64,000 bases of DNA, taken from contig BFEA01000046.1 in NCBI GenBank assembly GCA_003427395.1, positions 2,754,509 through 2,818,508 of the forward strand. The letters run 5' to 3'. Position 1 is the first letter of the stretch, and the number at the start of each line of letters is the position of its first letter. Of this stretch, positions 13,303 through 64,000 are shown one piece after another. This DNA is from Chara braunii. Its lineage: Eukaryota > Plantae > Charophyceae. The notes below the pieces were generated by a model that searched no databases, was not told the DNA's origin, and saw only the letters and a list, made by a program, of their open reading frames with translations. Made by a program: the position numbers and the translations under genes.

Positions 13303-15046
13303 GTATTTTCCGTGATTGAGAAAACCCAAGGGGAAATGGTTGATTGTGGTGAGATTTTGAGAAGTATAGACTTTGAATTTTATGTGGAAGAAGATTATGA
13401 GAGTTTGCTCACTAAGCAAAGCCTATGAATGAGATTGATATGACTTCCTAATCCGTGATTGTAGTGGGTGGGGAGTGGTTTTATCCACTTTGTTAAAATT
13501 AGAGTTTGAAAAGTGTTCATGCTTAGCCGATTACTCGGCAATTATAGATTTCTATCTTCATCAGGAATTAAATGGTATTTCTTGACTGTTACCTTTTGCT
13601 TAGCTAATTTTGAGGAGTCAAGGCTTGGAGTGGATACAACTAAATGACCGTTTTGGCTGAAGGTAAGAATTTGAGGAAGTGACCGTATACTTTTTCTGAA
13701 GGCTATGTTTGAATGGTAATTGGTTTAAGCATCCGTTGTGACGCGGACGTCGCTTAATAAGATCCGGGCAAGTTGTCGTATCAAATACCCTTACAAGGGT
13801 ATTTGATGTGTTTTCTGCAAGTCACGTGAGTGTGGCCTCACCCACCCGACGGCGTGCGCGCGAGAGAAAGCTTAGGTCCTCGCAAGGGTGAGCGGCGCGG
13901 GCGGGGTATTGACGGCGAGACACAACCATGCGCAGGCTGGGTGTGCGTGACGTCATGGGCCAGGCAGACACACGACACTTCGTCCCCTTAATTTCTTTGT
14001 GTCTTCACGTTTATTCTTATTTTTACTTATAATGTTTCCTAATTCTAAATTTTTGTTAAGTTCCTTTGACTCGGTGATCAATTCCGAGGCCGATATCGGG
14101 ACCAACAGGCCAGGCTCCATTACGGTATCGCCGGGCACGGATGGCCGTCGCGGCAGTCGAGGACCTTGGGTGCGCGCCCTTTGGGTTGGCCCACGACGCA
14201 GGAGAAAAGGCTGAGTGGTGAGGCCAACTGATGCGTCGCACCGTCCGCCGACCACAATTATAGTGAAAGGTTTGTGTGTGAGCATGGCCGGGTGCAGGAG
14301 GACGGAGCGGCTAAGGGCACTATGGGGAGGTAGCTGTAGCCGCTTCTCCCATACGGGGCCCTTCTCCACGACAGGCCTCAAAGCTTTCATGGTAAAGGTG
14401 AGCTATTACTACCAAGATCTACATTGGGTCCGCTCCACGTGGAAACATGCTACAGGCCACCGCAGGCCCATGCCTACGATTTCGCGGCTCACTACCTCTG
14501 GGTGGGCAGGTCACTTAGGTCGTAGGATGGTGAACTTGCCTAGGCAGATTGGGCCCAGGGGTACTATGGCAAAGACTGTCTGATTGGGTATAGGAGCGGC
14601 AGGCTAATCGGACCACCTACGAGCGTGCTCCCTCAGAATATTTCTCAAGAGAGTTGGTGTTGTTGGGCGGGACGGACCGTGCGCTACAACGGAAGGCCGA
14701 CCTGGAGTTGTTACAGGTGCCTTTGTAGATCCAACCTCCATGACCACCGGCCGACTGTCGATATCAGACGCCCCACTGCGGTATATGTGATACTGTATCA
14801 GTTGGCGCAAAGAGCATGCGACAGGTGCCAGGACCGTGAGGCAGAGCAGCGAGCGACGAGCAGCTGCGGAGGGGAGTCGGAGGAGGAACCAACGGACGAA
14901 ATGAATCAGGGCGCATTTCAGCGCCGGATTCATTCGAAGAAAACAGCTATGGAAGGAGGGGTAAGTAGGATTGGAAAGCAAAACACCAGCCCGTTTCTTG
15001 ATGAAATCGGGCAGGGAAATAATTGATTCTGAGACTCTCGTACCGG

Positions 15047-18000
15047 TGTCGGGCGGTCGAAGGTCAGTCGGCCACCCTAGTTTTGGCAGATTGACCCTTG
15101 GAATAATTGGCTAGAGGGGGATCGACCGGGACTTTCGCCCGAACTATTGGAAAAAATTAGGGGTACCCCGAGCACCCTTAAAATTGGATATGACGACCGC
15201 TAAGACTAACCCTCGAAATTGACGAGAGGGACTGCCTCTTTTACCGCACTGACGTCTACCTCATTTCCGTCCGCTCCAAGCCTATCTCCGGAATGACTGG
15301 CCACGGGACGACAATGTGAGAGTGGGCCTTGGGATGGTCTTTCTACGTCCCACAACTGGCGCGGGGATGGGGCCTCAGATATAATTTATTTTAATATTAA
15401 AATTAAAAATGAAAAAGGGAATTAAAAACAGTGGAAGGGAGGAGAAAAATGGGATATTCTTTATTTTATTAAGTTTCCTTGCTATTTAATTTTAATGGGA
15501 TCGCCCTCATTATTTGTATTTTCCGGTAATAGAATTAAAAAAAATAATAATAAGAAAAAAAATCAAAACTATAAAAGAGGAAGAAAACATGAGAATTTTC
15601 GTTATTTAATTGAATTTTATCGAAATTCATTTTTGATGAAATTGCCTTTATTTGTATTATTTTCGATAATAGAATTAAGAAATACGAAAAACGATTAAAA
15701 AATGATAAAGGGAAAAAAACCGATAATTATTAAATGCTTGATCAAATTTTATTCAAATTATTTCCGATCGGGTTTAACCTCGGATTATTTATTTACTCGG
15801 TAATCGAGATCGCTTGCATGACTCACCTGACTTGCCTGATTCCCAGCCTTGCCGCGACCTATGTGTTATGAGTGTAGGATTGGATGGCTGCCGTGGTCTT
15901 GCCGCCGTGCTACTTCGGTTGCGCCGCTCGGCTTCTTTGCTTTGGTGTGGCTGCTGGTTCGGTTCGGGTACATGGTTCGGGGAGTTTCGGTATCACTACG
16001 GGGTTGCGGCATTCTACGTTGGTTCGACATCGGAGTGGTGCATGTCGCTCCGTCGTTTGCAGGATCGGTTTTGGTCTGGCATGGACATGGAACTGTTGGC
16101 TGGTGCTTACTTTCAGGTCCGGGACATGTTCGGTACTATCATGCCGCATCCGCATAACATGGTATTCTGCATCGAGCTGGTATGATGACGAAACAAACCG
16201 TTGTTCAGGTTCCATATTGGTACGGTATTCGGCATCAATCCAGTTCTCCATTGGTTCCGCACAGTGGGACAGGTACGACACATTGGGTCAAGACAGGCTC
16301 GGATTCGGTATGGTCGGTCGGGCATCGGTAGCGGCGAGGGTTACTTCCGATTGGCAACTGCAATATGGAATTATTAGCCAGGTACGAGTGTTCACACAAG
16401 AACCTTCCGGTACGACTACTGGGTTGATACAATCTATCCGGACGCAGCGAATGGCACCGCCATTACCGGTGGATCTGAGTTGTGGCTTAGGCCCTAGGTA
16501 CTGGTGCTGATTCAATAGCACAACTGGCCTTGGTGCAGATACTGGTGGGCTCCCTAGGACTGTGTGGGACCATCGCTGTTGTGGGTCTGCAAGCCTTGAT
16601 CCCCAAAAAACCTTATTTTTTGAGGCCCTCGGCCTGGCGCAGGGATCCGCATATAGCCAGGACAGTTGACAGATGACGGGGGGTTCCTTCGGAAGGGCAG
16701 GTGGAGGCAGTGTACCAGGTGTACCCCTCCCACGCAACAGTGCGGAACAGAGAGACACGAATACTGGTGAGCTGGGGTGAGTTTGTCGTCGGGGAACGGG
16801 CACCAGCGCTTGGAGCAGGGATTGATCAGCCCGGTTGGGGGCTCAGGCCGGGGGAGCATGGACATGGGGGATACGGACTGAGGGAGACGACAGCATAGTG
16901 AGCCGGGTGTACACAACCCACATCGGAGCGCGATCCGGAGAGGGTCGAGTTGCTCTCGTAGCGGGCCGTCGTTCCTGGTGTCTGCCACTCGCACCTTCAC
17001 ACAGCCCGGTTGGAGTCGAGGAGTAGGCGGACAAAGGTTATTAGGGGGCGTTCATAGTCCACAACAGGTTTTGATTGGTCAGCGAGAGAGGGGAGATTCG
17101 AGGCGGGCGCAGAGGCAGTAGTGCGCCTGGCGTGCGCCGCTCAGTATGAAGTACACGAGCGAGCTTGCTGAGAGAAGTCGTCCTGAGCATGTGGATAGAC
17201 GGGGCGATATCGAGGACAACCAAAGGGAGGCACAAATGAGCTCCCGTGAGTGAACAGGGAAGCGGCGCGCAGGTCGGGAGAGAATAATGGGCGTGGTGTA
17301 ACCCGTGTGCAGGAAGGAAGGTTGGGGTAAAGGGAGCTCTGTCGACACCCCTTCAAGGGTGGCTTAGCGGGGTGTGTGTAATTGCGACAGCGCCGCCTAT
17401 CAGACTGCTCCAATCTGGAACGCATTGAGTAGGGTCGAATCCTGCCCGAGAGAGGTAGGGGCTGTAAGGGGAAATCAGCGCGCTTGAGAAGACTCTTAAA
17501 GTGGGAGGTCTTGCCACCATCTTTTGCTCTTGGGTACTACCCTCCCTGTGAACCGTTATCTTTCTCCCTCGCGAATAACACCTGCGCTGTGAACTGTGGG
17601 AACGGCGAGAGGTCGAGGGAGGGAGTGTACCCGAATTCGAGCCATGACTGGGCACAGTAATGACAACATGATCGCGTGTGGGGCGGTATCACAGCGTCAT
17701 GCTTGCAGGAATGAAGATGACTTTCAGACCAATAGGTGACAGACGTTGGGCTCGTCCCATGACCGCCCGATTGGTAAGTAGTGTTGACCAGAGGTCCCTG
17801 AAGGAGTTTACCAGCGGGAAAGTTCTCAGAAAGGAGCATTTGTTTAGGTCAATCGTCTGAGATATGACTCTGGCTGCGAAAACGTTCACTTCAGCGTTAC
17901 CACAATCGTCGTCCCTAGCGTGTGTAGGGTGATGGAGGCTAACTGTAATCGGGCTACACTTTGGCTACTTCAGACTCGGAACAAGGGCAGACTCTCGGCT

Positions 18001-19446
18001 ATACTTCGGATTAACCCGTTCTGTCGAACGGTCAGTCCGCCATCTGAAATGAGCTTTGAATTTCTTTTCCTTTTTTTTGTTGAAAGGGACTCTTTTAACA
18101 ACGAACTGTGAGGGAGACAAGAGGGAGAATAAAGGGAGAGAGAACAGCGGGATAGATTAGAGAGAGAGAATGTGAGACGGAGCGAGTGAGAAAGAGGGAA
18201 CTGGAAACGAGACAGTGAGAAGGGGGAAGAAGTCCCCCCCAATCGTCCCTTTTGAATACTGCGAATGGCTGAATAGAACGAATTGATTTGAGTGTTCGGC
18301 CGAGAGGGGTCACACGTTTGTGTATTACGTTTCCCTTTCATTTATAATCAATTTCTTTTCTTATTTCCTTGGAACAAGGACTGCGATGATTATCTGAACT
18401 AGTTATTTAAAAAGTTTCTGGGAAAGTGAGTGGGAGAAGGAGATATGGTTGATGTTGCTGAAGTGCATCGGCGCTCTGAACGTTCAAGCGCAACTTCCAC
18501 AGACATACTGTTTCACATGTTTGGCTAACGGCCCTCCCCGTTTGTGAAGGGAAAGATGATCGGGAAACGTACACCCCTTAGTGTTTTAAGGGGCAGCTTG
18601 TCAACCGGCGCTCGATCTATTGGGAACAGAGCTCGCTAGGAGAGCTCGAGGCCTCGCCAGTGAAAGCGTCCAGCTTTTGGGCGCCAAGGGAGCACACATG
18701 AGACAAGAGATCCTACGACCAGGGTTAAAGCACAGCCTTGTTGAAACAGAAAAGGTTTGACTTTCGTAATTCATATTTCGTGATCTAATTGTAAATCGGT
18801 CCTGGTTGAGTGGTAATTCAAAAGGGGGGGAAGGAAGGCTATTCCCTGGAAAGGTTACCGGAGATGATCAGCGGGGCGGGAACCGTTACTACTCACTGAA
18901 AAACATCTTGGTTACCTGCATAATATTTGTGTATATATGTATATATTCGTATAAGAGTATATATATATATATTTATAAGTACTTATCTTGAAGGAGAGAG
19001 GAAAAAACAAGGGAATACTTTGGGGAACCACTAATTAGCGGTGAAGCGAAGGGTACCATTCTTTGGAAGCACCCCGAACTGGAACTCAAAGCTGAGACTT
19101 TTGCTGTGAGTGCTCGAGGCTATTTGATATTTGATGCAAAAGCTCTTCCAATTATATCTTCGTCTTTTCATGATCTTTGACTTTGTATAAAGCTCCCCCA
19201 TTTCTAGCAAGCCCTTGCGCTCTGATGATGGAGGGAAAAGGAACATAACTAGCGGTAAAATTTCCTCCACTCGCTGATGAAGAGATGGGGCTCACAGTGA
19301 TTACGCCCAAGAGTGTGACAGGCAATAACAAGCACAAATTCCCTGCTGGTCGCTGAGTACCTCGGAAGCGAACGCGGCGAGGTGACAGGCGCCGTAGCCC
19401 ATGGCTTCAGCGAACAGCAAATGACCCCTCCCCGGGTTTCCTCACA
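15047..19446 (+). mobile_element. 4.4-kb solo-LTR-like insertion (second family) with CCGG TSD
   Basis: TGTCGGGCGG...CCTCACA is flanked by CCGG at 15043..15046 and 19447..19450. The empty site GTACCGGGCGACC is seen at ~7601. A related 5' end recurs at 63164. Orientation is assumed. Confidence 0.88.
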
Positions 19447-22400
19447 CCGGGCGACCTCGTTTTTCACGTCGGAATTAGTAGAAGGTTAGTGTAGGGAGAG
19501 AAAGAAAGGAAAACTGGTGCGCGGAGATGCAGTGATGGCGGAGATGGAAAGATGTGATTATCACGAAACTCCGTCGATTCGCGACGAAATCGGCCGAGGA
19601 AAGAAGCGATCTAGGGGTTTTTCGGCAAGGAAAATCCATTAGAAGTGTTAGAATAGCAAAAAAATTAGTGTAGAGGGAGATTAGTACTGAAAAGCTTGCG
19701 TTGGGAAACAACGGGAGCGAAGGATAAAAGAAGCGGGAATTACAAGTCTCGTTCGTTTTTGGGTGAAGGCGGGCGAGAGAAGACCCTAAACAGGGGGTTT
19801 CAATGTCGAGCGAATTCATAGGTGGTGTTAGTTGTAATAGGAAGTCAGTTGAAGTAGAGTCGGGAGAGAAAGAGTGTGCGTCGGAGTGTATGGGGGACGA
19901 ATATGGCCGCTCGAAAAAACGAAAGTCCAGCTCTATCCTGGACGAAGTCGAGCGAAGGAGGATAGCCCAAGATTTTTTGCCATCATGAATGCGATGACAA
20001 TGACAAATTTCGCTATGGAGGTGCTGTTTTGGCTGTACAATAGTCTGAAGTTGCGCCGAAAGGGAAAATCGAAATAGTAATGTACCTTTCCGAGTTTTAC
20101 AGGAAGATTCATTTGATTATGCCCGTCATTTCTATAGAATTGTCGCGGGAAGGCAACGAAAGATAGACACTTCTTGTTACCTGGTGTGAGGTTCTTCCTA
20201 TATAGAGAAAGTTAATCTGTCTCTTTTCCCCTAGGTGCATCGTTGGAGGTGAGGCGGTTATAGCAGCGAGGTGTTACGTTGACACTCGGCAGTGTAGTGG
20301 CGTTCCAAACGTAATTTGAGGTGGTTGTCGCCCGACCAAGGTTATGGCGGGATTCGATGAACGCCGTACACCAGCGGGATAGAAGAGCTTACCTGCATTT
20401 ACCACAAATGAGAAGGACAAAATAGAACTTACCCAAGGGAATATATCGTTGTGTCAACGGCGCAGTGCTCCTGCAATTGAGGGAAGGAGAGAGGGAGTTG
20501 TTGTTTACAAACAAACGAGTGAACTGTAGGTAGCCAATTCTGACTACGTCAGGGCCAGCTATAACAGACCATTCGTAGGTGAGTCTGACCAGACTGCTGG
20601 TCTGAAGAATCAAAGGAGCAAGTGGGTGGGGACGGCAAGAGTATGCTCTCATTGATATTCGGATTCGGTGCTTTGGTTCTCCGCTATTGGAATACTGGTG
20701 CATTTTTGTTCTCCAAGCGGCATTATGACTGCTAGGGAGTGCGGTGGCCTCCCAACATTGGGAGAGTGGTGTGTGTGGGGCTGGTCGCCACCAGCAAGTG
20801 AGCAGGCATATTATAGATGGATTGGAAGGGAAGCACAGTTGTCGTTTGACGTGCTGTTGAGGAGCATTGTGCACTTGCCATACGTACAGTAGGGTGGCGG
20901 TTGGTGGTTGTGTTGTGGCTGCATGGATATCGTGCATGTTGTGCACTGCTAGCTACGAGTGTGGTGAGACCTGCGCTACGTACTATTACGGTGCTTTGTC
21001 TTTTGCGCACAGTTTTTGCGCACACCACGTGCTTTGCCCGATTGTACCTCCTCTAGGCTATGAAGCGACAGTTCGATTGGAGGTGGAAGACGGTGTCGGC
21101 GCGAATACCCTTACAAGGGTATCCGCCCTGGTTTTTGGATATGACAGAAAGTAGGTTTGGTTTAAAAATTGAAGTACACCGCGCGAGTCGCGACAGCCTC
21201 AACGGTTTATGTTGACTGGAAGATTGACTAGAATAAAGGGTGTGTGGGCACGCGGATTTAAGGCGCGCGTGATCTTTTTATTTGTTGATGATTGAAAAGC
21301 CGACGTGATCGCCGACCATATTTTTTCCTTCTCATTAAATAGGGATTAAGAAGACTGCGTCTCGTTGGCTGATGTGCTAGCGTGCGACCTATGCGTACGT
21401 GCGAAGGACGGCATCGACAACAGTGTGACTCCTGAAGGCGTTGCGGTAGCTTGGCGCGTCGCACAGTGCCCGTGTGGTTAGGCGTCCGTAAGAGGACAAA
21501 TCTGGACTTGGGCGTCGTGTTAGTGGTTACGGCGTCGGGCGTTCACTAGGGAGATTCAGGGAGCGAGATCGGGCAGCGACGACGTGCGGATATCAGAGTA
21601 GCACGGAAGGATCGAGGGGTTGAGGGTCTGGCGGGGCTATCCCCCTTGGTTTCGCCGATGGCGACGGCGAGACGGTGTTAGCATCCCGTCCTTTTTTCCC
21701 CGTCTGTCGTCCCTTGACGGTTAGGATTTCCCTAGATACCTTATTATTTTTGTCGTCGCCCGCCAACCACGAATTGGCCGCGGCGCGACGAGCACCGGGC
21801 ACCTCAAAGTCCCCATTTGAATGTTTGCTACTGCCTCCGAAGGTCGCACCGGGCCCAGAGCACCAAGGCCACGCATAGGCCTTGCAGCGGGCCGTGTGCA
21901 GGTTCCGTGGACGAAAATCCGGGGGGTCTGTTGCTCCCTGAATTGTAGTTTTGAGAGGCAACCTCTGCAGAGGGCCGCACTCTCAGCTCCGCGGCCAGCC
22001 GTCTGAACAAGAGCTTGCCCTTTGGGGGGCCGAGGCAGCAACGGGCACTGTGTGCATCGAGGAAGCGGTAGCAACGGGCGCCAGCATTTAGGTGGTGGGC
22101 AGCGCTCAGGGAGCCGACTGTAGTTAGTAGGGGCGGGGAAAGGAAGTCAGGAAGTGGGGGAATGAAACCGGAGGGGTTTCTGTGCCGGGTACATGCGCGG
22201 AGTAGCCAAGCGGAGCAGCGGTAGAGGGAGGATGAAAGGAGGCAGCAGGTGCGCAGGGGGGGCGGAGGACTGAGGTAGCGGGGCTGACCGGGCAGCACTC
22301 CGCGACACCGGACGGACTGGACGGGTGGGGCTGTGCGTGCAGATGGAGCACATAAGTCGGGGCGGGTCCGACAGTCGGCTGTTTGGAAGGATTGAGCACT

Positions 22401-24586
22401 GTCGGACCGCGCAGCGTCGAAGAGCCCAGGTGGTGACAACGAGAGTGGAGGAGGGGAGTGCAGGCCGGTAGTGCGGAGTAGCTGTAAGGGAAAGAAATGA
22501 TGACCGTGGGGAAGGAAATGGGTGGAGCCGGAAGAGATAGCGCAGGGGACGACTGGGAAAAAGCGGGCAGGTGGCACAACAGCGGGCGAACCCGGACGGG
22601 GGCAGGCACCAGGTACATGTAGGAAGAGGAGGCAGCGAGGGGGGCGACTGCGTTGGTAGGAAGAAGAGACCGTGAGGCGGAGTGGCGGGCGCAGCGTGGG
22701 GCTAGCCGGGCGACGCAGCGCAGCAGGGGGCGGACTGAGGGCTGGACGCAGCAGCGAGAAGTGAGGGAGAGAGGAAGGGACCCGGGCACGAATTTGCGCC
22801 GGGTACATCCAGCGAAAAAGGGGGGTTGAGGATGGCGGACTGCGAGCTTGAGCGCAACGGGAAGCGAGATCACGACCGATTGGAGATGGAATTGGGGGAA
22901 GGAAGGACCATAGTGACCTTTTTTACCCCGGGCGAGTTCAATGGTGTACTTAGTTTGGTGAAAGAGTCAGTAGGTTAGAAGTTAGTGAAGAAAAGTCCCG
23001 CGCCGAGCTATGGCGGGAGGGGGAAAGGAAGAAGAGGAAACGGGCATATCTCGCCCGATTCCCAACGAAAACGGGCGAACAAAGATCGGTTTTGGGGGTT
23101 TTGAGGTGGTCCGGATTGAATGGCCGCGCCTGATTTTCAAGATGAGCAGCGGGTTGGCTGGTACGGCGCGTTTGAGCTGCGCCTGGTGTTGGCTGGCATA
23201 CGGATGAACTTGGCCGTGATGATGGCCAGGTGCTTTCAACTCTTGAGATGAGCACAGCAGGGTAGGAGGGAAGTATGTCGGGGTCAGACGGCTAAAGGTA
23301 GAGTGAGCAGTGAACGTACCTGCCCGTATTCTAGCGGGAAGTTCATGCCCATCTTCCGCACCTGATGGGCGGAGGAATAGTCGCGGTGTTAGTACCCCTG
23401 GGCTATATCTCAGTCGTGCTCCTCTTTATCTCAACCTCGGCTGTCGTCCTTGTCAAGGAGGTGACTGCCGCTGAGTGGCGATTGTGGTGGGGGGGGGGGC
23501 AAACCGTTTTTTTCTAATTATTGCTTTTTTTTTTTTTTTTTTTTTTTTACGACGGCTACTTCCTCAGCCTCGAAGTAGTAACCNCCGCCAATCGACCGAC
23601 CATTTCCCATTCGAAGGCCACCGCCGCCGTCATCTGTGACTAGTAGTAGTCCTGACTGCAGTCCTGAGTCCATCCGTCTCTGGCCGGATTTCGGCCAGAT
23701 ACAACTATTGACCGGTGTTTGCAAAGGATGCATCGGAGGAAAAGGGGTGACACGTACCAGGGCTCGCTGAGTGTGGACAAGGGACCGTCCAGGTCCATTA
23801 AAAGGAGAGGGTGAGCGCTAACTAGGAGGATGCGAGGATAACAGATAGAGGAGAGGGGAGAGGCTGGCGAGCAGCGGGAAGACCGCGTGCAGACGGGCGG
23901 GAATTGAACATCGCATGAAGGGAAAGGAGACTAGGAGATGGCGAGTAGCTGGAGGAATTCGAAGGGCTTACCTGCCGATCGTATGAATTCCCTCATGTGG
24001 CCCGTTCTGATTTTGGGCAAGCAGACGGAGTGAGTATCTGACTGTCGGCAGAAATGTAAAGGACTGATACTTATAAAATTACGGGTGCTGATGTGCGGCA
24101 GTGGGTTGTGAAGTCCTTGATGGGCTTTCCCACTCACAGGTGTTGCTGGACTTTGTGGGGTGTGGCTGCTGCTGGCTGCCGCTAGCCGCATGAGCTACTG
24201 CTGCACACTGTTGCGCGTTGCTACCGACGACTACTACTGTTGCCATTGACCGGCGCTGAGTATTACCGCTGCGTCTGAAGGCTGCTGCAGGCTGAGGGAA
24301 ACGACCGTTGCTGCGTCGGTGAACGGTATACGGACTGCTGCTACCGGCGACTATCGCTGTTGCTATTGATTGCCATGGAGCACTGCTGCTGCTGGTGCTT
24401 GCCGTTGTTGACTGTTTTGGGCTGCTGTGCGGCCGTGATTGGGCTGAGGGGAGGAGTTGAGCATTGGGAAGGTAATCTGACCGAGCAACTCGAGGGTTAG
24501 TGCTGCAAATTGGGATGCCGTCAGGGGGTTGACTGCGGCAATCTGATTCCTTTAACCAAGTTGTCAGTTGGCTGTCATTGTCGGGC

Positions 24587-24771
24587 NNNNNNNNNNNNNN
24601 NNNNNNNNNNNNNNNNNNNNNNNNNNNNNNNNNNNNNNNNNNNNNNNNNNNNNNNNNNNNNNNNNNNNNNNNNNNNNNNNNNNNNNNNNNNNNNNNNNNN
24701 NNNNNNNNNNNNNNNNNNNNNNNNNNNNNNNNNNNNNNNNNNNNNNNNNNNNNNNNNNNNNNNNNNNNNNN
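24587..24771. other. Assembly gap (185 N) with duplicated flanks
   Basis: 24493..24586 is identical to 24772..24865, consistent with an unmerged contig overlap. Confidence 0.92.
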
Positions 24772-25384
24772 AGGGTTAGTGCTGCAAATTGGGATGCCGT
24801 CAGGGGGTTGACTGCGGCAATCTGATTCCTTTAACCAAGTTGTCAGTTGGCTGTCATTGTCGGGCCCTCAAGCGACTGAAGATATCGAGGCCCTCTCCTG
24901 TGAGTTTAAGTGCACCCCTCTTGGATCTGAGAGTCTCAAAGTGACTCCTTCTGCCCGTCTTGTTCTAAGTCTAGTCCGTTTGGTTCTGAGAGGAAGGCGG
25001 CAGGCAGGATTGCAACCCGTAATCCGCGCCAAGGCCTCTGTGGAAGGTTGCCCCACCGATTGAGGGAGCTCTGCCGGAACTCAAGAGGAGTTCTGGAGGC
25101 AGGGAACTGAGTGGTAATTCCCTGATTCCCTCTATAAACCCAGTCATAGCCCATATCTATACTTCTTTGTACGTTTGACTAATTGTGCTGCATGCATCCT
25201 GTACTTTGACTTGGTTTGACTTTCAGGATGCGAACTCAGACTGAGATAAAGAAATGTGTGTGCAAGTTCAGTTTCAGACTTTGTTTTGTTGCCTGAAAGC
25301 AGACTGTGAACAGAGGGGGTTGCATCTGGGGGAAGGTTGGGAGGAAGGCAGTGTTGCACGCACACTGATTGGGTCGTTAAGGCT

Positions 25385-26315
25385 GGGAGGTCCCCATAAG
25401 TTTGGGGAAGCCGAGCGCTTTGTTTATTTTTGGGTTGTGTGGAGCCTCAGGCCGCTTTATATGTTTAGGTAGCCTGAAGCTCGGGAGGCTGGGATGTCCC
25501 CATAAGTTTGGGTATCCCCAAACTTATGGGGACATCCAGTGCAGTGAACTGTATGGAGAGTCAGGACGCTCTATAACTTTAGGTGACCTGACTGCTCTGA
25601 TTTGTGAGGGTTTGACTGTGAACGACTTTCAGGGACCCAAGGCGCTCTATAAGTTTAGGTATTTTGGGTTGCCCTGTTTTATTTGGGGTTTTCTCAGTTT
25701 CGTTGGTTATGAACGAGGAGGTCTGAACCGCTCTATAAGTTCGGGTGGTTCGGCTCCTCTCGTGTTTTGTTCTGAGGGGGTAATTTTGGCAGGGGACAGA
25801 CCGCTCTATAAGTTTAGGTAGCCTGGCCTATTGCCTCACACAGATTGGATCAGAGAGAAACGAACGTGGCAGGGGACCATATATGTTCCATAAGATTGGA
25901 TGGTCTGGCCCAATGCCTCGCACATGCTGGAACCCGAGAGGTTACAATTTGGCTATACTTTATTATTATTTTATCTACGAACAGGCTAGTCAGGCACGGG
26001 TTCCATAAGATTGGATGGCCTGGCTATAGCTTATCATAAGTTGAAGAGAGTACAACTTAGAGTATAACTGAAGGTAACCTGGACCGACTGAGCATTGTTT
26101 CTAAGATGAATGACTCAGTCCTACGCCTCTTTGAAAACTAAGTTCAGAGAGGTATATATAACTTGGGTATTAAATAGTTCAGGGCGACTAAGCATTGTTT
26201 CTAAGATGAATGGCTTAGTCATATGCCCAAAGGAAGAGAAAAATAGTTGTGCAGCCTGTTCGTGTATACTTGATGGTTGAGTCAGGCATGTTCCATAAGA
26301 TTGGACGGTCTGGCT
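25385..26315 (+). repeat. Array of stem-loops with conserved (C/T)ATAAG(T/A)TT-type loop inside the LTR
   Basis: About 12 motifs, each enclosed by its own inverted repeat, e.g. AGGAG..CTGAACCGCTC-TATAAGTTC-GGGTGGTTCGG-CTCCT (~25716) and GACTAAGC...GCTTAGTC (~26186). Homologous arrays at 9893..10025, 29205..30005 and 59140..59750 (minus strand). Confidence 0.75.
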
Positions 26316-29300
26316 TTATGCCTTATGTAAGCAGGTTATAAAGGGGTAAATCATTGAAAGATTATGAACTATTGTTTGCTTAGGTTGACTTGGGGATGGT
26401 AAGAGTACTTACCTTTGTGGTTTGGCCTGCGTGTGACTGAGTGAGGCTACTACTTGGTTTGAGTTTCAGTTGGATAGGTAGTTGCTTTAGTCGCTCGCTA
26501 CGTGCTAGAGCCATAGGAGTTAGTTTCAATTTCTGCATTTTTTTAGCTTAGTTTTTTACTTGGATCAATTTTCGCATTTTCTGGGATCTTTTGTTATACT
26601 TGGTATTGTATAAATTTTGGTACGGTACTTTCTCTACGGGAAGCGCTGCCGAAATTTTTACAAATCCAAGGAGTTGCTGCCAAAATCTTTGCTAATTCAG
26701 GGAGTTAAACAAAATTGGACTTTGGAAACTCAAAGGCTATTTCTGTTTTGATATTCGGGCTGATATAAATTTTGAAAAGACACTTTTCCTACGGGAAGCG
26801 CTGCCGAAATTTTCTTAGTTTAAAGGAGATAGACTATATTTTGACAGGTGGCGACTCTGGCGATCCACTCTGTATATGGGAGACTATGCTAGGGTGTGCC
26901 TTTGCTTTGGGCACTGCTTAAAGGTAGATTCAGGCTTAGTTAACTAAGAGGATTTGAGTGAGAATGTGTTATAAAGTTGTAGTCTCCATACACTTATGAT
27001 TTCAGCTTGGGGATTGGCCTGTCATGTGTTACAGGTCCTCTTGGTCGTTTGATTCAGGATTGAGACTAGTTTCATCTTGGTCCTACAAGGATCACATTCT
27101 GTTATCACTGATAACAGGTCGGTTGCCGATTCGTCGGTTTACGATTCAACTCCAATTCACTCCTGCCACTCAACCTAAAGGCTTTAGCCTTGTGATTTGA
27201 ACTGTTTTGTTGTCTTTTCACCTGGATTTTATTGAATGGCCATCCAACAAGAGTACTGAGTATTTATTTAAGAGTTGCACGAGTGAGGCTTGTATGGCTA
27301 GGGCGAGGGGTATGAGTGCAAAAAATGTTTGAAGTTGACTCCGTGTAGTACGTGCGCTTGTGTTGGACTTTTGATGTGATTGTAGGTATGTTTGTGGTTC
27401 AGACTCTGGATGTAACTGTCTGCGATTACATACATATATGGCTGAGAGGAGCCCCACTGTGACTGTGAGAAGTGATCGTCCTGTATAATTAACCCTTATA
27501 TATTATAAGTGCCCTGAGTGTTTGAGAGGCGACTGTGATTGTGCATAAGGGTTAACTAGATTGTGTCCTGAGAGAAGGGGGGTTCCCTTTTCACCCTTGC
27601 TTTTTAGAGTTTGTGTGGTTGGACGTTATAGTATGTGGCAGCCGTCAAAGTCAAACCCCTTGACTTCCGCCCAGGCCTGGAGTAGGTCTCATCTCCAGGG
27701 CAGTAAGAAGCGGATGCCACCACAGGTATGGACCTGTGTACCACCCACTCGGCACATGGTGCAGAAGAGGGTGTGTGGTGCTCAACCGCGCATGGCAGTT
27801 GTCCAGCGTCGAGAGATTAACCCTCAAGGCGCGTGTCAGTCGACACTTGAGTGTCGAACGCCACCCTCGAGACTAACGAGGACCGGGTGAGTATGGGTAC
27901 TACATAGTACGCCGTCATTGCGACCACTTGCATCCATTTGCATTGCGAGTCGATATGAGTTAGCCCTGCGTCCGCGCGGTTTTATATCAAGTTTCGCGCG
28001 CGACGCCTATCCGATTTCTGCGTCGAAAAGTTATGGGACGGCTACTGAAGGGACTAGGAGTGTTGTCGCGTTATTTGATGTGTGTGTGCGTGTGTTTTAT
28101 TTTTGTGTCGTAAAGTGGTGTGCGCGTGGTGTGTGGGATGCGTCCTAGTCGACCGACGACGAGCCGCGCTTAGGACTTCAGCCCCCCAAGATGTCGGTTC
28201 GCGTGCGGGCCCGATAGGCGTATTACCGCTCGTACCCCCTATGCTACAGCAAACGAGAAATGCCCTCGGCTGGTCCACCTTTGCGATTGCAACAGATTAG
28301 CTTTCGTACTGTGAACTGGTAGCTCGGCGGGGATACACCAACCGAAGGGAGGTGACAGCTCCCGTAAGGTGGAGGTAAGTTGTGCCTCGCGTAGGCCCTA
28401 TCCTGTCGTAGGGGCTCGCGAGAGGTATGGCTGGCGCACTCGGCCGGAGCGGCCTAAGGAAGCTCCATTTGTGTGTTCGCGGCAAGGTTGGTCCAACTCC
28501 TGCGTGACGCGGCCGAGAGGGTCCCGCGTCGCTATGTGCGGTGCCAGACCGATGCGATCGACAACGGTGTGATTTGTGGGTGTGATCAACTTATGCAAGG
28601 GGGTTACCGCTACAATTGGAAGGATCATTAGGGAGTCAATAGTCAATAGTTTGACTTCGGTTGACCAACACTTGCGCATGTTGGCCATTATTGCGGGACC
28701 CTCATGAGACTAAGAATTACAAGGCCATCTCCTGCGAGTTGAGTCAGTCCCACTCCTGTATCTCGAGAGTCTCAAACCTCTTATCTTCTGGCCTTCTTAC
28801 TCTCAGTCTAATCCTACTCAGAGAGGAAGGCGGCAGGCAGGATTGCAACTCATAGGACCGCATCAAGACTCTGTGGGGAGTCAACCCACCGATTGTGGGA
28901 GCTCTGCCGGAACTCAGGAGGAGTTTTGGAGGCAGGGAACTGAGACGTAAAGGTTTCGTCTTCCCTCTATAAACGCAGTACAGCCCCTACTTGTATTCAT
29001 TACTATGTTTGACTGAGTATGTTCCCTGTCTCCCTATTTTGACTTTCAGTTTGGCCTTTAGGACACAATCCAGACTAAGTTAAGGAATGATTGTGCAAAG
29101 TCTGTTTCAGTTTTATTTTGACTGAAAGAAGATTGTGGGATTGCATCTGGGGGAAAGGTGGAAGGAAGGCAATATTGCATGTTTGACTTGGTTCACCAAA
29201 GGCTAGGAGAGTCTCCAGAAGTTTAGAGGGCTCAGTGCTGTGTTTATTTTGGATTGTTTGGAGCATCAGACCATTTTATAAGTTTGGGTTGTCTGATTGC

Positions 29301-32300: not shown

Positions 32301-32340
32301 CCGCACTACCTTGTGCGGTGCCGGACCGATGCACTCGACA

Positions 32341-34530: not shown

Positions 34531-34561
34531 ATATACTGATCCCAGTTCAGTGCGTGTGCAC

Positions 34562-34564
34562 GAG

Positions 34565-34632
<68 letters not shown>
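34562..34632. repeat. (GATA)n-(GA)n microsatellite
   Basis: Direct reading. Confidence 0.95.
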
Positions 34633-43492: not shown

Positions 43493-43493
43493 C

Positions 43494-43571
<78 letters not shown>
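43493..43571. repeat. (GA)n microsatellite
   Basis: Direct reading. Confidence 0.95.
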
Positions 43572-43572
<1 letters not shown>

Positions 43573-50594: not shown

Positions 50595-52420
50595 CTCTCC
50601 ACCTTCCTCCTCTGCCCCTATCAACCATCCACCATAGCTAACCACCTCGCGCCTCTTTCCTCCTCCACCTCCATCACCAACCCACCATAACCAACCACCT
50701 CACACCTTCTTCCTCCTCCACCTCCTTCACCCATCCGCCATAGTCAATCACTTCATACCTTCTTCCTCCCCCATCTCAATCACCCATCCACCATAGCCAA
50801 TAACCTCACACCTTCTTCCTCCTCCACCTCCATCACCCATCCACCATAGCCAACCACCTCACACCTTTTTCCTCCTCCATCTCCATCACCTATCCACCAT
50901 AGCCAACCACCTCACACATTCTCCCTCCTCCACCCCGCTCACCCATCCACCATACCCAACACCTCACACCTCCTTCATCCTCCACCTCCGTCACCCATCC
51001 GCCATAGCTAACCATCCCCAATCTTCTTCCTCCTTCATCTCCTTCACCCATCCACCATGGTCAACCACCTCACACCTCCTACCTCCTTCACCTCCATCGC
51101 CCATCCACCATAGCCAACCACCTCACACCTTCTTCCACCTCCACCTCCTTTATCCATCCACCATAGCCAACCACATGACTCCTCTCTCCTCCTCTGCCTC
51201 CATCGCCCATACGCCATAGCCAACCCCCTCACACCTTCTTCCTCCACCTTCTTCACCTATCCACCATAGCTAACCACCTCACACCTTCTTCCCTCTCCAC
51301 CTCCACCCATCAACTATAGCTAACTGCATCACACTTTTTTCCTCCTCCCCCTCCATCACCCATCTACCTTAGCCGACCACCTCACACCTTCGTCCTCCTC
51401 CGCCTCCTTTAGGCAACCACCTCGCACCTCCTTCCTCGTCAACCACCTCACACCTACTTCCTCGTCAACCACCTCACACCTCCTAACTCCTTCACCTCCA
51501 TCGCCCACCCATCATAGCCAACCACCTCACACCTTTTTCCACCTCCACCTCCTTCACCCATCCACCATAGCCAACCACCTCACACCTCTTTCCTCCTCTG
51601 CCTCCATCGCCCATACGCCATAGCCAACCCCCTCATACTTTCTTCCCCCTCCACCTCCTTCATCCATCCACCATAGCTAACCACCTCACACCTTCTTCCC
51701 CCTCCACCTCCTTCACCCATCAACTATAGCCAACTGCATCACACTTTTTTCCTCCTCCCCTTCTATCACCCATCCACCTTAGCCAACCACCTCACACCTT
51801 CGTCCTCCTCCGCCTCCTTTAGGCAACTACCTCACACCTCCTTCTTCCTCCACCTCCATTACCCGTCCATCATAGCCAACCACCTCACACGTTCTTCCTC
51901 CTCCACCTCCACCTTTCCACCATAGCTAGCCACCTTCCACCTTCTTCCTCCTCCACCTCCTTCACCCATTCCTTATGGCCAACCACCTCACACCTTCCTC
52001 CTCCTCCACCTCCTTTACCTATCCACCATAATCGACCACCTCACACCTCTTTCCTCGTCCACCTCCATCACCCATTCACCATAATTGACCACCTCACACC
52101 TTCTTCCTCCTCCACCTCCTTCACTCATCCACCGTAGTCAACCACCTCACACCTCCTTCCTCCTCCACCTCCATCACCCAGCCACCATAGGTAGCCGCCT
52201 CCCACCTTCTTCCTCCCCGACCTCCTTCACGCATCCACCACGGCCAACCACCTCACAACTTCTTCCTCCTTCACCTCCATCATCCATCCAGCATAGTCAA
52301 CCACCTCACACCTTTTTTCTCCTCCACCTCTATCACCCATCCACCATAGCGGACCACCTCACACCTTCTTCCTCCTCCGTCTCAAGCACCCATCCACCAT
52401 AACCAACCACTACACACCTT
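50595..52420 (+). repeat. C-rich 53-bp minisatellite (about 34 units)
   Basis: Unit CCACCTCACACCTTCTTCCTCCTCCACCTCCATCACCCATCCACCATAGCCAA; anchors at 50791 and 50844 give the 53-bp period. Confidence 0.95.
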
Positions 52421-57006: not shown

Positions 57007-60000
57007 CCTCGTACGTTGTAGCATAGGGGGTACGAGTGGTCTCACGCCTCTATCGGACCCGAACACGAACTGACGCATTGGGGGCCTGAAGTCCCAAGTG
57101 TGACTTGTCGTCGGTCGACTAGGACGCATCCCACTCATACGCGTTACACCACACTTTAAAACATAAAAGTAAAAACATACTCAAACAACGCAACAACACT
57201 CTTAGTCCCTTTAGTATCCAAATCATAACCTTCCGACACAGAAATCGGTTAATTAATACGCGTGCGACTTAGTATACAACCACTCGGTCGCAGAGTCTTC
57301 TCATGCCGACTAGCAATGCAAGCATACATAAGCAGTCGCAATGATGTCGTACTATGTAGTACCCATAATCACACGGTCCTCGATGGTTTCGAGGGTTGTG
57401 TCCGACACTCAAGTGTTGACCGACACACGCCTACAGTAGTTAATCTCTCGATGCTAAACAATCGCCAAGGCGGTTGACCACCACACCCTCTTCTGCCCCT
57501 TGCGAAGAGTGGTGTTACTGGGTGGTACACAGGTTCAGACATGTGGTGGAAGTCATTTCTCGAGGTCGTGGAGACAAGCTCCATCAGCCAGGGTCTGGAA
57601 AGAAATCAAGGCTCGTATACCAAGCTCCAAAGTAAGGCTCGTATGCCAAGCTCCAAAAATACTTCCTCCAAAGTAAGGCTCGTATACCAAGTTCCAAAAA
57701 TACTAACCTGCATAAGGCACAATCACATACGAGAGCCACATTGTCATACTTCAAATTGAATGTGGTCAACTTTATTGTTCCCGGTAACTCACACCACACC
57801 TCACACAATCAAGCCTCAGCCATTGTTCAACTTTCCATAAGATCTCATCAGTTCTTTATAATGCTTATTAAACGAAGTCTGGTTAAAACCCTCAAAGAAA
57901 TATATTAAATTACAGGGCTAAGGCATGAAGTTGAGGTATAGGTGTAAGCAGAGTTGTGTCGTGAGCCGATGGATTGGCGATCAACCAACAGATGTATTAT
58001 CAGTGATAACACAATGTGATCCTCGTGGGATCAAGCTGAATCTAATCCAATCTTGAGTCGAATCAATCAACGAAAGACTTGTAGCATAAGACAGGTCAAT
58101 TCCCAAGGCTAGACTATCAGTGCATGAGGAATGAATCTCCATAGCACATCCTCACTCAAGATTCTCCTGATAACTAAGTCTAAGTCCACCTCTAAGTCAG
58201 TGCCCAAAGAAAGGTAGACCTATGGCAACATCTCCTATATGAAGGGTGGATCGTCCGAATCGCCACCTGTCAAAATATAATCTAACTCTTTGAAACTAAG
58301 AAAGTTTCGGCAGCGCTTTCCGTAGGAGAAGTGCTTTCTCAAAATTTATATTAGCCCGAATACAAAACCAAAATAATTAATTCTAGAAAGTCAAATTTTG
58401 TCTAAATCCCTGAATTAGTAAAACAATGGGCATCATCTCCTTTAGAGAGGTAGACTTCTCAGATTCATACTGACTCAGATATGAACTCAAACATAAGACT
58501 TTATTTTTATCAAGACAAAATTTAACTAGCTCCTTAGATTTGTAAAAATTTCAGCGACGCTTCCCGTAGAGAAAGTAACATTCCAAAATTTATACGAAAC
58601 TAAGCTCAAAACCTTAAATAATGCTGACTTTTCCAAAGTCAAATTTTGTCCAACTCCCTAAATTACCAAAAATTCGGGTAGCACTTCCCCTAGAAAAGAG
58701 GGTTTTCCATATTTTTACTAAGCCATATATAAACTTAAACAAAAAGTTGAACTTTGAAATCGAGATTTGACTAACTCTTTGGTTTCTTAGAAATTTCGGC
58801 AGCACTTCTTATAGGAGAAGTACCTTTCCAAGATTTATACAAAGCGAAGTATAACAAATGATCCCAAAAAATGCGAGAATTGACCTAAAAAAAAAAAAAA
58901 ATTACCTCAGAAAATGCAGAAATTGAACTAACTCGTATAACTCTAGTACGTGGCGAGCAACTAAAGCAACTACCTGTCAAATTGAAACTCAGACTAAGTA
59001 GAGATCTCACTCAACCACATACAAGGTCAGACCACAATGGTAAGCACTCTCACCCATTACTAAGTTAATTGCTCATAAAATAGTTCATAGACCCCTAAGA
59101 TGATTTATCATTCTATACTTAGCTTACATATGGCATGATGCTAGACTATTCTGCTTAGAAACAATGTCTAGCATGCCCTAGGATATACACGAACATGTTG
59201 CACAACTACTTTTCTCTTCTTTGGGCATATGACTATACCATTCTGCTTAGAAATCATGTCTAATCGCCCTGAAATGTTTAATGTCCAAAGTTTAATATTT
59301 TCGAACTTATTCTAAAAAAGAAAGAAAAATATAGGCAGGGGATTGAGTCATTTTGCTTAAAAACAATGCTCAACCTGCCCAAATTATTTTTTGTTGTGCT
59401 TTGTAGTTTCTCTTCTCTTCTTAGTGATATGACTTAACGTTAGACCATTCTGCTTAGAAACAATGTCAAGCCGCGTGTTCATATGCAAATATCATTAAAG
59501 TACTTCCAGTTATACTCAATTTACGCTTTTGTATGTGGTTTCAAGCTAAACCATTCTGCTTAGAAACAATGCTTAGCCTTCCACGAAGAGTCCTCCCTCA
59601 AATAAAACAAGAGATCGAACCCTTCAGCCAGGAAAACCCTCAAAAATAAACACATCAAGGAGGTCATTCTGTTTAGAAACAATGCCTGGTCCGTCAAAGA
59701 ACAACCAAATAAACATAGCCTTGGGTCATTATGTTTAGAAACAATGCCCAGTCTTTGGTTGACCCGGTTAAACGCATGCAAAACTTCCTTCGTCCCACCT
59801 TCCCCCCAGTTCATCCCTTAGTCTGCTTTCAGTAAAAATAAGAAGAAACTTAAGCTTTACATACGCATTCCTTCCACTCAGTCTGCTTAAGTCCTGAAAA
59901 TAATCAAAGTCATAAGGGAAAACATGCATACATCAGTCAAACTAAAGGGAAATAGTCAAACAGACAAGTAGTGGGTTCATCAAGTGAGAAGGAGGTATGC

Positions 60001-61527
60001 CTGACAGTTCTCCGCCTCCAGAATCTTGCCTAGGTTCCGGCAGAGTTTCCGCAATCGGTGGGCAGACTCCCCACAGAGTCTTGATGCGGTCCTACGAGTT
60101 GCAATCCCGCCTGCCGCCTTCCTCTCCAAACCAATAGACTAGACTGAGATTAAGTACGGCAGAGAGATAAATATTTAGTCACTCAGATATAAGAGAGGTG
60201 CACTCAAACTCACGTGAGAGGGTCTTGGTTTCTTCAATTGCCCGAAGGCCCCATAATAATTGTCAAAAAGTCTGTTGCAATTTGGTCAACTGAAGTCAAC
60301 TCTCCGACCGTTGACTCACTTATGACCTCTCAATTTGCAGCAATATCCCCTTTTAAAATTGTGGCGCCACCCCCTTTGTTTTGTTCGAAATGCCGACAAC
60401 AACGGGAAAACTCAACCAAAAGTCATTCGCACAGCAACTGCGCGCGACTGCAAGATACAGTATGATATATGGTGTCAATTACATCAAACTATAGCATTGT
60501 CAGTAAATCACTTTAATGCGTCGACATTTATTTAGCAGGATGCACATCGAAGCGCACCGTAGACCTTGAATGTACACCATAACAAGGTTCAACCGCACCT
60601 CAGCGAAGCACCACGGCAACACACAACAGTGGAGCACAGCCGCAAGTCTTAGCTGCGATGCACAACGCAATACTTGACAGAACGCAGCTAGCTCAATGCC
60701 ACAGCAACAACACACAACAACATCGTATAGTGATGAAGTGCAGAGACGAACACCGCAAGCGTGTTGTAAACACAATAACGCACTGTGGGAACTTTAGCAA
60801 GGGCCACTTAATCCACTCAAAGGCCATAACAGATGTAGCTTTCGGCTGTAACAGCCACTCTGAGTGTCATATCGGGACACATAGCTGTGAAACCCAGCAG
60901 CAAAGCGACAACAACAAGGCAAGAGAACGAGCAGCCCCACCTCTTCTTGGGCACTTTGTGCTCAAATTGCAGCTTCTACACAGTCTAGCAATCTACAGGT
61001 TGACAATGCATCCTGCTGACATTAGCAGCAACCACCGAAGTGCATGAACACGTTGACCTTGTAAAGTCGGCAATGTAGACCATCGCCAGGACCAAGTACA
61101 TGCCCTCACATCACCATCCTCATTCTCCTTTCTTAGTCTGTTCACATTCGAGTACCCCAATTCGGGGTCGCCGCTGGATTTGAGCTCAAGTCTGCAGTTC
61201 AACTGCTTCGTGAATCGTGTGTGCATCAACTGAGCAGCCTGCCAATATGCCCAATAAGAAGGAATCTTCCACACGAACATAGGAAGATACACCTACGAGA
61301 AGGATACCAATTACGTACCCCTCTCCTTCACCTTTCCCTCTTCAGACGTTTCCTCTCTAAATGCCCCTAGCCCGAAGATAAGACCAGGTCTACTCCGCTT
61401 TGGCTTCCTGCATCGTAACCAAGCAGGAACGAATGTGGTCGGCTAGAGGTGACTATGTCCCTCAATGCAGATTCGACCATGCAGATCTTTGCCTTGGCCA
61501 GGTACGTGCCCTGCACCCACTTCTTCT

Positions 61528-61582
<55 letters not shown>

Positions 61583-63163
61583 AGCAAAATCGGAATAAAT
61601 CTTTCGCTGAGGCGTGGGCAGATTCACAGCCAAATTCTGCACCGAGTCTGCCTTCGAGATTCAGCTTTGTAGTTGATCTCCTCAGTTCCTCCCCTGTCTC
61701 GTTCGCCCAGGTGGATGCGGCCCCACGAAGGAGAGGACACCTCACCGTCGAAGAGAACCACCGCACGCATGGAGAGAAAGCCGCGCTATGAGGAGAGATA
61801 CGATGAGCAGTTCCGGAATGAATTTCTCGCTAGAGAGCGGGAATATTCATTACTATTGAGAGGCCGTTATGGCCTCCGGCAGGCAGCCTATGAGCCACAT
61901 AGTGCCAAATCCGCAACGTCATCGGGGAATCCGACCACGTCATCGAGCTCGCCGTAGTCGAGAACCGCCATTCTGCCTTTTAGTTTGCTCGATTCCTTGT
62001 GGGATGGAGTGAGATCTCCGTTTTTCAAATCCTGCCATATCTTCTTCCCGACACCACTTGCACAGTGCTTTTCTCTACGAACACCCATCCTACTAATCTA
62101 TCCCCAAAACTAACATCGCCATCAGGCTTAGCCACCTTCAGAACCCCCATTTTGCATCTTACCTCGCTCGAATCCATCGAGGATCGAGCGAGATACAAAC
62201 TTTTCACTCCCATCATCTTTCCCTCTCGACACTCTCCGCGCACGACTTTTTCTATCTAACTTTCATTTCACTAACCCAAAGACGAATCTAATGCTTCCAC
62301 TGATTTCGCCCGGCCCAAAAACCCCAATCTAGCACTTTCTCTTGCCCGATTTCGATTAGAGATGAGTAAGTTACAGTTTCACTCTTCTGCCATAGCTCTA
62401 GCTACTCCCCCGTCGTTGTGCTCTTCTCTTCTGCGCACGCACCCGGCGCAGAAGCCCGTCCAGGTTCGTCCTCCTCTCTGCCTCCGTTTGCTTGTGCCAA
62501 ACTGCGCTCTAACGCAGCCACCGCACAGGGGCGGATGAACGCAGCCAGCGGGAGGGATCATGGAAATCGAAATCCGCTAAAGGAGTGTGTAACAATTCTC
62601 CTCTGGATCTGTCCGCCTGGACAGTAGCTGGCTTTGAAGCGTGCGGCATGTGCTCGACAGTAGTGGCTGCTCCGACGCCCGCGACAAGTAGGAGGGCAAA
62701 GGCCCGCTGCAAGGCCTGCAACGTGAGTCTTAGTGACGTGAATCCGGATGCAGAATTCAAGTGAGACATTTGAAGACTGAAGTGGGGGCGTGTTCCCTGG
62801 GAACAACGGCCTGAGCTAGGCGGCCCCCTCCTCGACGCTGAGTGGCCCCTGCCCAGGCATAGCACACCACCTTACGGGTCCCAACAGGTGCACTCACACT
62901 CAAACCTCTCACAGCAGATGGGGGGGGAGCGGACGGTGCACCGCAATGGCTGACCCCACCACTCAATCTTTCTCCTACACCTTGGGCCAACTTGAAGGGC
63001 GCACACCCAAGGTCCTTGACCGCCGTGTCGGCCACCCGTTGCAGTTTCAATCGCTCCCCGCTGTAGAGAAATTTCGCCAGCATCTCGAATACGCCGGAAC
63101 CCGAGCGGGCCCGTCGAATGAGGAGCGTGATCAAGGTCCTCGACTGAGGCGACGACCACCCGT
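57007..63163 (-). mobile_element. Giant LTR, minus-strand copy (3' terminal ~300 bp missing; 5' part interrupted at 63164)
   Basis: 57007..60350 is the reverse complement of the conserved LTR 3' half (compare 28600..32035). Assigning 60350..63163 as its variable 5' half is inferred from position. Confidence 0.75.
61533..61578. repeat. (CT)n microsatellite
   Basis: Direct reading; a shorter (CT)n lies at ~52545..52572. Confidence 0.95.
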
Positions 63164-64000
63164 TGTCAGGCGGCCACAAGTAGTGCGCCGCCTGAAAACG
63201 GCAGTTTAGGGGTTTAGGCTCAGGGTTAAGTCCGCGTTTTGACAGTGCTTTGGGATGACCGGGCTGCAGGAATTATGAGAACTCAGGGTACCCCTGATTC
63301 TGCACGCACTAGATTTTAAGAGTAACCCCCAAAGACAGCAAGAAGGGTAGGTGCACTGAGCACGGCTGGAGACCGTCATTTCCGATCGCTCAGAGGACTG
63401 GGATCGTTTTGGCCTGCCGCGGAGAGAGATCGTGGAAACAGACCTCGCCGCGGCATTTTGACGGCATACAACCGGGGCCGAAATGAGGCCTCGGATTTTT
63501 GTCTATTCTAATATCATAATTAAAAATAAAAGAAAAAAATTAAGACCAGAAGAGGAGCGGCGAAAAACGCAATATTCCTTATTTTCTTCATTTTTCACTA
63601 CATTTAATCTTAGGGGAAATTCCCTTGTTATTTTATGTTTTCGGCAATGTAATTAAAAACATAGAAAAATATTAAAAAATGATAAAAGGAAAAAGAAACA
63701 AAACGAAATCGGTTATTTATAAAAATTTTCTTGGAATTTAATTTTGGCAAACTTACGATTAATTTAATATTTCCAACGATAAAATTAAGAAAAGGGAAGA
63801 ATGATGAAAATTGATGAAAGGAGCGGGAACGCATGATTATCAGGAGGGAGGCCTAATTTCGCCTCGATTATCCCGACGTTAGTTTTGACCCCGGATTGAA
63901 TATTTTCCCTGGGTTTTGTCATTTTTTTTACTACCCCTGACGGCTGAGATTTCCTGAGTCGCTTTCCCTGGTTTGCTTGATCACTAACACTGACCACTGT
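63164..64000 (+). mobile_element. Start of an LTR related to the 15047..19446 element (runs off the window)
   Basis: TGTCAGGCGGCC start with a terminal hairpin. GGGTACCCC and a GGCCTC(A/G)GAT + AT-rich block occur in the same order as in 15047..15800. Left flank CCGT. Confidence 0.7.

Follow-up and report, generated by a model that had tools for sequence, protein, structure and literature searches.

Giant long terminal repeats (LTRs) of gypsy-type retrotransposons in the charophyte alga Chara braunii most likely insert at four-base NCGN sites (we put the probability at about 0.8), by means of an integrase that works with a 4-bp stagger and a strong preference for a central CpG. The evidence comes from a 64,000-nt stretch of C. 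braunii contig BFEA01000046.1, hereafter the window, and from five further loci (L001-L005) of the same assembly, GCA_003427395.1, which were fetched around Chara proteins related to the pol remnants of the window. In all probability the window consists of giant solo or partial LTRs, each about 4.4 to 8 kb long and nested in one another, that stem from non-chromovirus Ty3/gypsy retrotransposons. Copies and boundaries were taken from a comparison of the window with itself (self-blast) and from a print-out of the junctions. The features are listed in Table 1, where the "host" LTR is the repeat (U2) that is interrupted by two insertions, E1 and E2.

The initial annotation of the window had listed five flanks, and all of them were found where it had placed them: the complete target-site duplications (TSDs) CCGG (15043/19447, around E1) and ACGG (21090/28564, around E2), and the single flanks ACGA (33578), CCGC (48279) and CCGT (63160). 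It had also pointed to empty sites for both complete TSDs. LTR copy U1 does carry, at the points where U2 is interrupted, a single CCGG (7604-7607, in the context GTA-CCGG-GCG) and a single ACGG (9249-9252, GAAG-ACGG-TGTAAC). As each tetramer is single in the first copy and stands on both sides of the insert in the second, the duplications are genuine and the CG is part of the target. Taken by itself, the E1 duplication is compatible with a length of 4 or 5 bp, as CCGG follows an A in either flank, and that of E2 with 4 to 7 bp, as the flank continues past ACGG with TGT, the same bases with which the element starts; only at 4 bp are TG...CA ends kept in both. The full-length element of L001 has CCGC on both sides and excludes 5 bp (CCCGC on the left, CCGCG on the right). 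The proposed 4-bp stagger was hence confirmed, exactly for L001 and, for E1 and E2, on condition that their ends are TG...CA.

The L001 element occupies 7830-35049 of its locus, that is, 27.2 kb including gaps. Its 5′ LTR (7830-16351) starts TGTCGGAGG and ends GCGACA, and its 3′ LTR lies at 27506-35049; both start TGTCGGAG and end G(C/T)GACA, being giant LTRs of the TGTCGG...GACA type with a length of about 7.5-8.5 kb (gap estimates). The end of the 5′ LTR is followed by AAAA and then by the primer binding site TGGCGCCGTTGCC, and a G-rich tract, gggtggggg...tatta, lies directly 5′ of the 3′ LTR. The L005 element (coordinates 825-21448) measures about 26 kb, with a gap-free LTR of 5.8 kb (15627-21448) and an internal region of 14 kb; GG separates its 5′ LTR from the primer binding site, cagggaagac precedes its 3′ LTR, and its 3′ flank is GCGT. 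The first 29 bases of this LTR are common with U4 (42510-48278), and its 3′ terminal block is common with U4 and with family B of the window. LTR pairs are present in L005 and L002 as in L001, the 3′ flank of L002 being CCAG. TGGCGCCGTTGCC stands 2-4 nt past the LTR end in L001, L002 and L005, and related copies occur in L003 and L004; these two loci gave no flanks, as the outer ends of their LTRs are lost in assembly gaps or lie beyond the fetched range. The primer binding site reads TGGCGCCGTTGCCGGGGA, which we take to be the complement of the 3′ end of plant tRNA-Asp, not of tRNA-Trp; a search with ARAGORN found no tRNA gene that would confirm its identity. Both L001 and L005 exceed the maxima of the 2019 plant survey, a 24.1-kb element and LTRs of roughly 5 kb (PMC6317226).

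Protein P0002, encoded between the LTRs of L002, has the Pfam domains RVT_1 (residues 100-271), RT_RNaseH (336-471), Integrase_H2C2 (663-716) and rve (732-826), that is, the order reverse transcriptase (RT), RNase H, integrase, as in Ty3/gypsy. Coding remnants in the window are confined to 219-3467, with RT on the forward strand (436-1281) and RNase H-integrase on the reverse strand (1471-3467), and in a protein search their closest relatives were C. braunii proteins with 53-84% identity. Window positions 1-5514 are 85-88% identical to L001 21153-26867, which belongs to the internal region of a full-length element with giant LTRs. The giant protein-free TGTCG...CGACA units can hence be identified on sequence grounds as LTRs, either solo or 3′ copies, that belong to autonomous Ty3/gypsy elements: the L005 LTR is homologous to family B of the window at both ends, and the pre-LTR sequence of the window units matches the polypurine side of the L005 3′ LTR. 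That the elements are of LTR type, as had been assumed at the outset, is borne out by their autonomous partners, in which a primer binding site and a polypurine tract accompany RT-RNase H-integrase.

Four further termini do not appear on the original list of flanks. At 32340|GTGT the two copies of a 1.25-kb tandem duplication inside U2 meet, and this is not a target flank. On their 5′ side, the three LTR starts at 6334, 13774 and 42510 are preceded by some 35-40 conserved pre-LTR bases that match the polypurine side of the L005 3′ LTR. All four are internal joints, and it is therefore legitimate to leave them out of the flank count. The flanks at 33578 and 48279 were counted as target DNA because each of the two units is bordered, at its other end, by sequence such as precedes a 3′ LTR, and they are the least secure of the five.

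E2 contains an assembly gap (24587-24771). This gap is internal and affects neither junction, and both junctions flank one host site. The 3′ half of E2 (24846-28563) is colinear with U2 28680-32340; among the sequences compared, no homologue of its 5′ half was found, and E2 may be either a solo LTR, about 7.4 kb long, or a complete element that was collapsed in the assembly. Its 3′ terminus was further examined by comparing Logan contigs of short-read runs with window positions 27800-33700. A 2018 short-read contig (X4 record 25) spans 28539-28765 with one mismatch and bridges the 3′ junction. Summed depth drops about 45-fold from bin 28391-28587 to bin 28588-28784, and this sets the limit of a very abundant family at the E2 terminus.

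For statistics we used eight independent events, that is, the five window sites together with L001, L005 and L002, which account for all outer termini of the fetched loci not lost in a gap, and took the CpG background from 300 host-side bases per site. CpG frequency is 0.041 in the window, 0.017-0.087 in the local host-side sequence and 0.049 in the host LTR; the CpG observed/expected ratio is 0.79. The central CG of the five window sites, for which the initial annotation had given a naive probability, stands out from composition also when local CpG content is considered (5/5, P = 3.7e-7). Over all events it is found in 7/8 (P = 1e-8 for at least seven), and in the loci that had been picked without sight of their flanks (L001, L002, L005) in 2/3 (P = 8.5e-3 for at least two). 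When all eleven available half-sites are read outward from the element, position 1 is C in 6, A in 3, G in 2 and T in none; position 2 is C in 11/11 and position 3 is G in 10/11; position 4 is G in 6, C in 2, T in 2 and A in 1; and no pattern appears at positions 5-10. A central pyrimidine-purine step is present in 8/8 sites, CCAG included.

We propose that the integrase would join the cDNA, through its processed CA-3′ ends, to the target across a 4-bp stagger. Targets with CpG as the two central bases would be strongly preferred, with a lean to C at position 1 and to G at position 4, and repair of the stagger would leave the 4-bp NCGN duplication. The preference is probably intrinsic to the integrase-DNA complex: a two-fold symmetric intasome may bend the DNA at its central pyrimidine-purine step and read CG in a base-specific manner, a model that fits because CG is symmetric and the leans at positions 1 and 4 are complementary. 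The same or closely related integrases would then serve both LTR families. The Chara integrase aligns to those of Ty3 and prototype foamy virus (PFV), the DDE triad is kept in both copies examined (P0001 and the open reading frame of the window), and a Ser occupies the position of PFV Ala188 / HIV-1 Ser119. No chromodomain was matched in the 214 residues past rve of the window integrase reading frame, nor in P0001, and neither a methyl-binding domain nor a chromodomain was found in the integrase-bearing proteins scanned.

The target rule itself is already known, and the suggestion that the window holds a new system was not borne out. Phygy, a non-chromovirus lineage of Physcomitrella patens in REXdb, has been published with TSDs given as "4 bp (100%) (NCGN)" for 186 elements of 7.7-10 kb, 81% of them with a tRNA-Trp primer binding site (PMC6317226). 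According to the same survey (Neumann et al., 2019), the length of the TSD, 4 or 5 bp, is characteristic of the lineage. The background given in the initial annotation, that plant Ty3/gypsy elements usually make 5-bp TSDs with weak preference, holds for the majority, but not for Phygy, Selgy, TatI, TatII and Galadriel, in which 4-bp TSDs are frequent: they account for 96% in Selgy, 100% in TatI and 49% in TatII (5/4 bp, tRNA-Asp), whereas Athila makes 5-bp TSDs and also uses tRNA-Asp (PMC6317226). Plant 4-bp TSDs with GC-rich central dinucleotides, and frequent nesting of Phygy, were reported by Jedlicka et al. (2019; PMC6911290).

With Phygy the Chara elements share the 4-bp TSD, the NCGN preference (7/8), nesting in other LTR elements and, in the proteins scanned, the lack of a detected chromodomain; this likeness is one of traits. 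They differ in architecture and probably in priming. Phygy measures 7.7-10 kb and its polyprotein fills the internal region, whereas the Chara elements reach about 26-27 kb, their LTRs measuring 5.8 to about 8 kb and their internal regions including long stretches without coding sequence, and where Phygy mostly uses tRNA-Trp the Chara primer binding site reads TGGCGCCGTTGCCGGGGA. What is new here is thus the charophyte host, the giant LTRs and a probably different primer binding site.

In architecture the Chara elements resemble the Athila/Tat superclade (OTA: Athila, TatI-III, Ogre, Retand), which also comprises very large elements with very long LTRs and large non-coding regions with tandem arrays. 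However, no sequence preference has been reported for OTA, and most of its members make 5-bp TSDs. The additional RNase H (RVT_3) considered in the comparison with Tat gave no match in P0001-P0005, whose gene models are partial. Chromoviruses differ by the chromodomain at the C-terminus of the integrase, which was not found in the Chara proteins scanned. Outside plants, the gypsy group of Drosophila is marked by 4-bp TSDs and palindromic target motifs as a property of the clade (PMC3276498), and ZAM integrates at CGCGCg, its integrase binding the site directly (PMC2527525). The 4-bp TSD is common to this group and to Chara, but ZAM has a longer motif and needs a second binding site 40-56 bp away, whereas the Chara sites are constrained only at the central CG, and the hosts belong to different kingdoms. 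PFV and murine leukaemia virus share with the Chara elements the TG...CA ends, the 4-bp stagger, the symmetric intasome proposed here and the central pyrimidine-purine preference (PMC4422553), and the Chara integrase with its DDE triad can be aligned to that of PFV; retroviral preferences, in contrast, are weak and not CG-specific.

An unlikely alternative is that CpG is recognised in its methylated form, or heterochromatin by its CpG methylation, be it by the integrase or by a protein partner, and that insertions are thereby steered into silenced repeats. Every insertion in the window does sit in another repeat, the CpG observed/expected ratio of 0.79 is compatible with CpG methylation, and Phygy too nests often in Physcomitrella, into Tcn1 elements (PMC6911290). 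Nesting, however, is expected anyway in so dense a repeat background, and the domains that would read methylated CpG or heterochromatin were not found in the integrase-bearing proteins. CpG is barely higher in the host LTR than in the window (0.049 against 0.041), and a preference for CpG alone would therefore not steer insertions into repeats. We would give slightly less credit still to the more specific proposal that NCGN preference depends on cytosine methylation, the integrase or a bound host factor reading 5-methyl-CpG so that the giant elements home to silenced repeats; if true, it would amount to a self-limiting safe-haven strategy common to Chara and to the Phygy elements of moss, and hence old in streptophytes.

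It seems very improbable that the sites reflect a general preference of short-stagger integrases for a flexible central pyrimidine-purine step, with no base-specific reading of CG. Retroviral integrases do favour central flexible pyrimidine-purine steps, most of all where the TSD is short (PMC4422553), and all eight sites, even the CCAG of L002, have that step. Such a preference predicts, however, that TA, CA and TG should dominate, which is not seen: CG makes up only about 18% of the pyrimidine-purine steps here (0.041 of 0.228), and 7/8 CG would then have P of about 4e-5. Chance, selection of flanks by the initial annotation or wrongly set boundaries (a true TSD of 5 bp, or a CG owned by the element) could be argued from the 4-5 and 4-7 bp left open by E1 and E2 alone and from the four termini left off the list, yet such an origin is hardly credible when there is exactly one tetramer copy per empty site, which makes the CG target DNA, the length is settled as 4 bp by L001, the four unlisted termini have turned out to be internal joints, and the pattern recurs in independent loci (P about 1e-8).

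Several points weigh against an integrase-borne NCGN preference as we propose it. The sample is small, with eight independent events of which only three were chosen blind to the answer. The CCAG of L002 lacks CG and may represent either a CpG that has decayed or a true exception. Two window flanks, 33578 and 48279, adjoin tandem arrays, and their status as target depends on the units being 3′ LTRs. An autonomous partner for the E1 family was not found. Finally, a host tethering factor, rather than the integrase, could underlie the preference.

If NCGN targeting holds, what had been a published 4-bp oddity of one moss lineage is now seen in a charophyte alga as well, and in elements of far greater size. 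Its occurrence in both moss and charophyte means that the trait is either old in the non-chromovirus gypsy elements of streptophytes or has arisen twice. For the Chara genome, TGTCG...CGACA ends together with a 4-bp NCGN TSD provide an annotation rule. The many giant protein-free units of this genome can now be attributed to autonomous elements, as their LTRs. With its DDE triad intact (P0001, window reading frame), the integrase of the family is a tractable protein for studies of how an intasome of retroviral type recognises CpG at the centre of its target.

Table 1. Features of the 64,000-nt Chara braunii window (positions are those of the window).
Feature	Position	Strand	Description
Ty3/gypsy internal-region remnant	1-6333	+	Pfam RVT_1, Integrase_H2C2, rve; tblastn with Chara proteins
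LTR copy U1	6334-10032	+	begins TGTCATACC; homology to U2 stops at 10032; carries both empty sites
Host LTR U2	13774-33577	+	three pieces (13774-15046, 19447-21093, 28564-33577), split by E1 and E2; terminus ...GCGCTCGACA
E1 left TSD copy, CCGG	15043-15046		right copy at 19447-19450
E1	15047-19446	+	4.4-kb TGTCGGG...CCTCACA insertion; second LTR family
E2 left TSD copy, ACGG	21090-21093		right copy at 28564-28567
E2	21094-28563	+	TGTCGGCG...GATCGACA insertion containing assembly gap 24587-24771
U2 single 3′ flank, ACGA	33578-33581		also the opening bases of the 82-bp satellite array 33578-34526
LTR U4	42510-48278	+	5.8 kb, TGTCGGAGCC...GCGCTCGACA
U4 single 3′ flank, CCGC	48279-48282		tetramer read at this coordinate
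Partial LTR U5	57008-60334	-	same family as the U units; from self-comparison; no terminus locatable
Single 5′ flank, CCGT	63160-63163		flank of the element starting at 63164; tetramer read at this coordinate
5′ part of E1-like LTR	63164-64000	+	starts TGTCAGGCGG...; runs past the window end

Searches for additional copies and relatives gave little. A structural search for TGTC[GA]...[CT][GC]ACA pairs with equal 4-nt flanks returned 247 pairs against 223 expected, and no new element. A metagenome scan for the LTR 3′ end GACCGATGCNNTCGACA gave 120 loci, all of them chance matches without homology past the seed. Two protein searches with LTR open reading frames as query found no match, a search of representative sequences found only low-complexity matches, and two scanned E1 reading frames (15878-16507 and 16291-16842) contained no Pfam domain. 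With a pol/integrase query, one word-limited protein search returned only Chara proteins at high scores, and a search of a protein atlas yielded no lineage information. We also considered U2 (13774-33577) and U4 (42510-48278) as the LTR pair of one element; this was ruled out, identity being about 69% over only some 300 nt and the outer flanks being different.

Self-comparison provided further details of the copies. The U1 region 6007-10032 matches 13440-15046, 19446-21096 and 28564-29347 at 90-92% identity. A pre-LTR tail of 334 bases with a sharp left edge is common to 6007-6333 and 13440-13773, and the 3.4 kb between the host LTR copies (10033-13439) matched no other sequence compared. E1 and the element starting at 63164 are distantly related, with 69% identity between 15352-15713 and 63468-63822. 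In the pol remnant, the RNase H-integrase segment (1323-3466) is inverted with respect to the RT segment; as its L001 counterpart (22481-24611) keeps RT, RNase H and integrase on the same strand, an internal inversion has taken place in the window copy. The last 1.25 kb of U2 are present in tandem duplicate (31091-32340 and 32344-33577, 82% identity); both copies end in CGACA and GTG lies between them. A perfect hairpin, AATACCCTTACAAGGGTATT or a variant, is found at each of the four LTR starts of family B, 7-10 bases in from the 5′ end (6340-6366, 13780-13806, 21100-21126 and 42516-42542).

Both 3′ LTR ends in the window adjoin tandem repeats. The array at 33578-34526 begins at the base directly after the LTR end; it consists of 82-bp units on the forward strand and belongs to the same satellite as a second array at 38042-39893 (68-bp units, reverse strand), the units being reverse complements and the two arrays inverted around 34527-38041. 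Three bases past the end of U4, tandem arrays of 164/173-bp and then 91-bp units occupy 48282-49461. Of the 31-mers sampled from window positions 27800-33700, about 5% occur in a soil metagenome run of 2023. A C-rich tandem array of about 35 copies of a 53-bp unit lies at 50603-52420 (GC skew -0.61) and recurs, together with a short stretch on each side, in L001 at 5937-6562.

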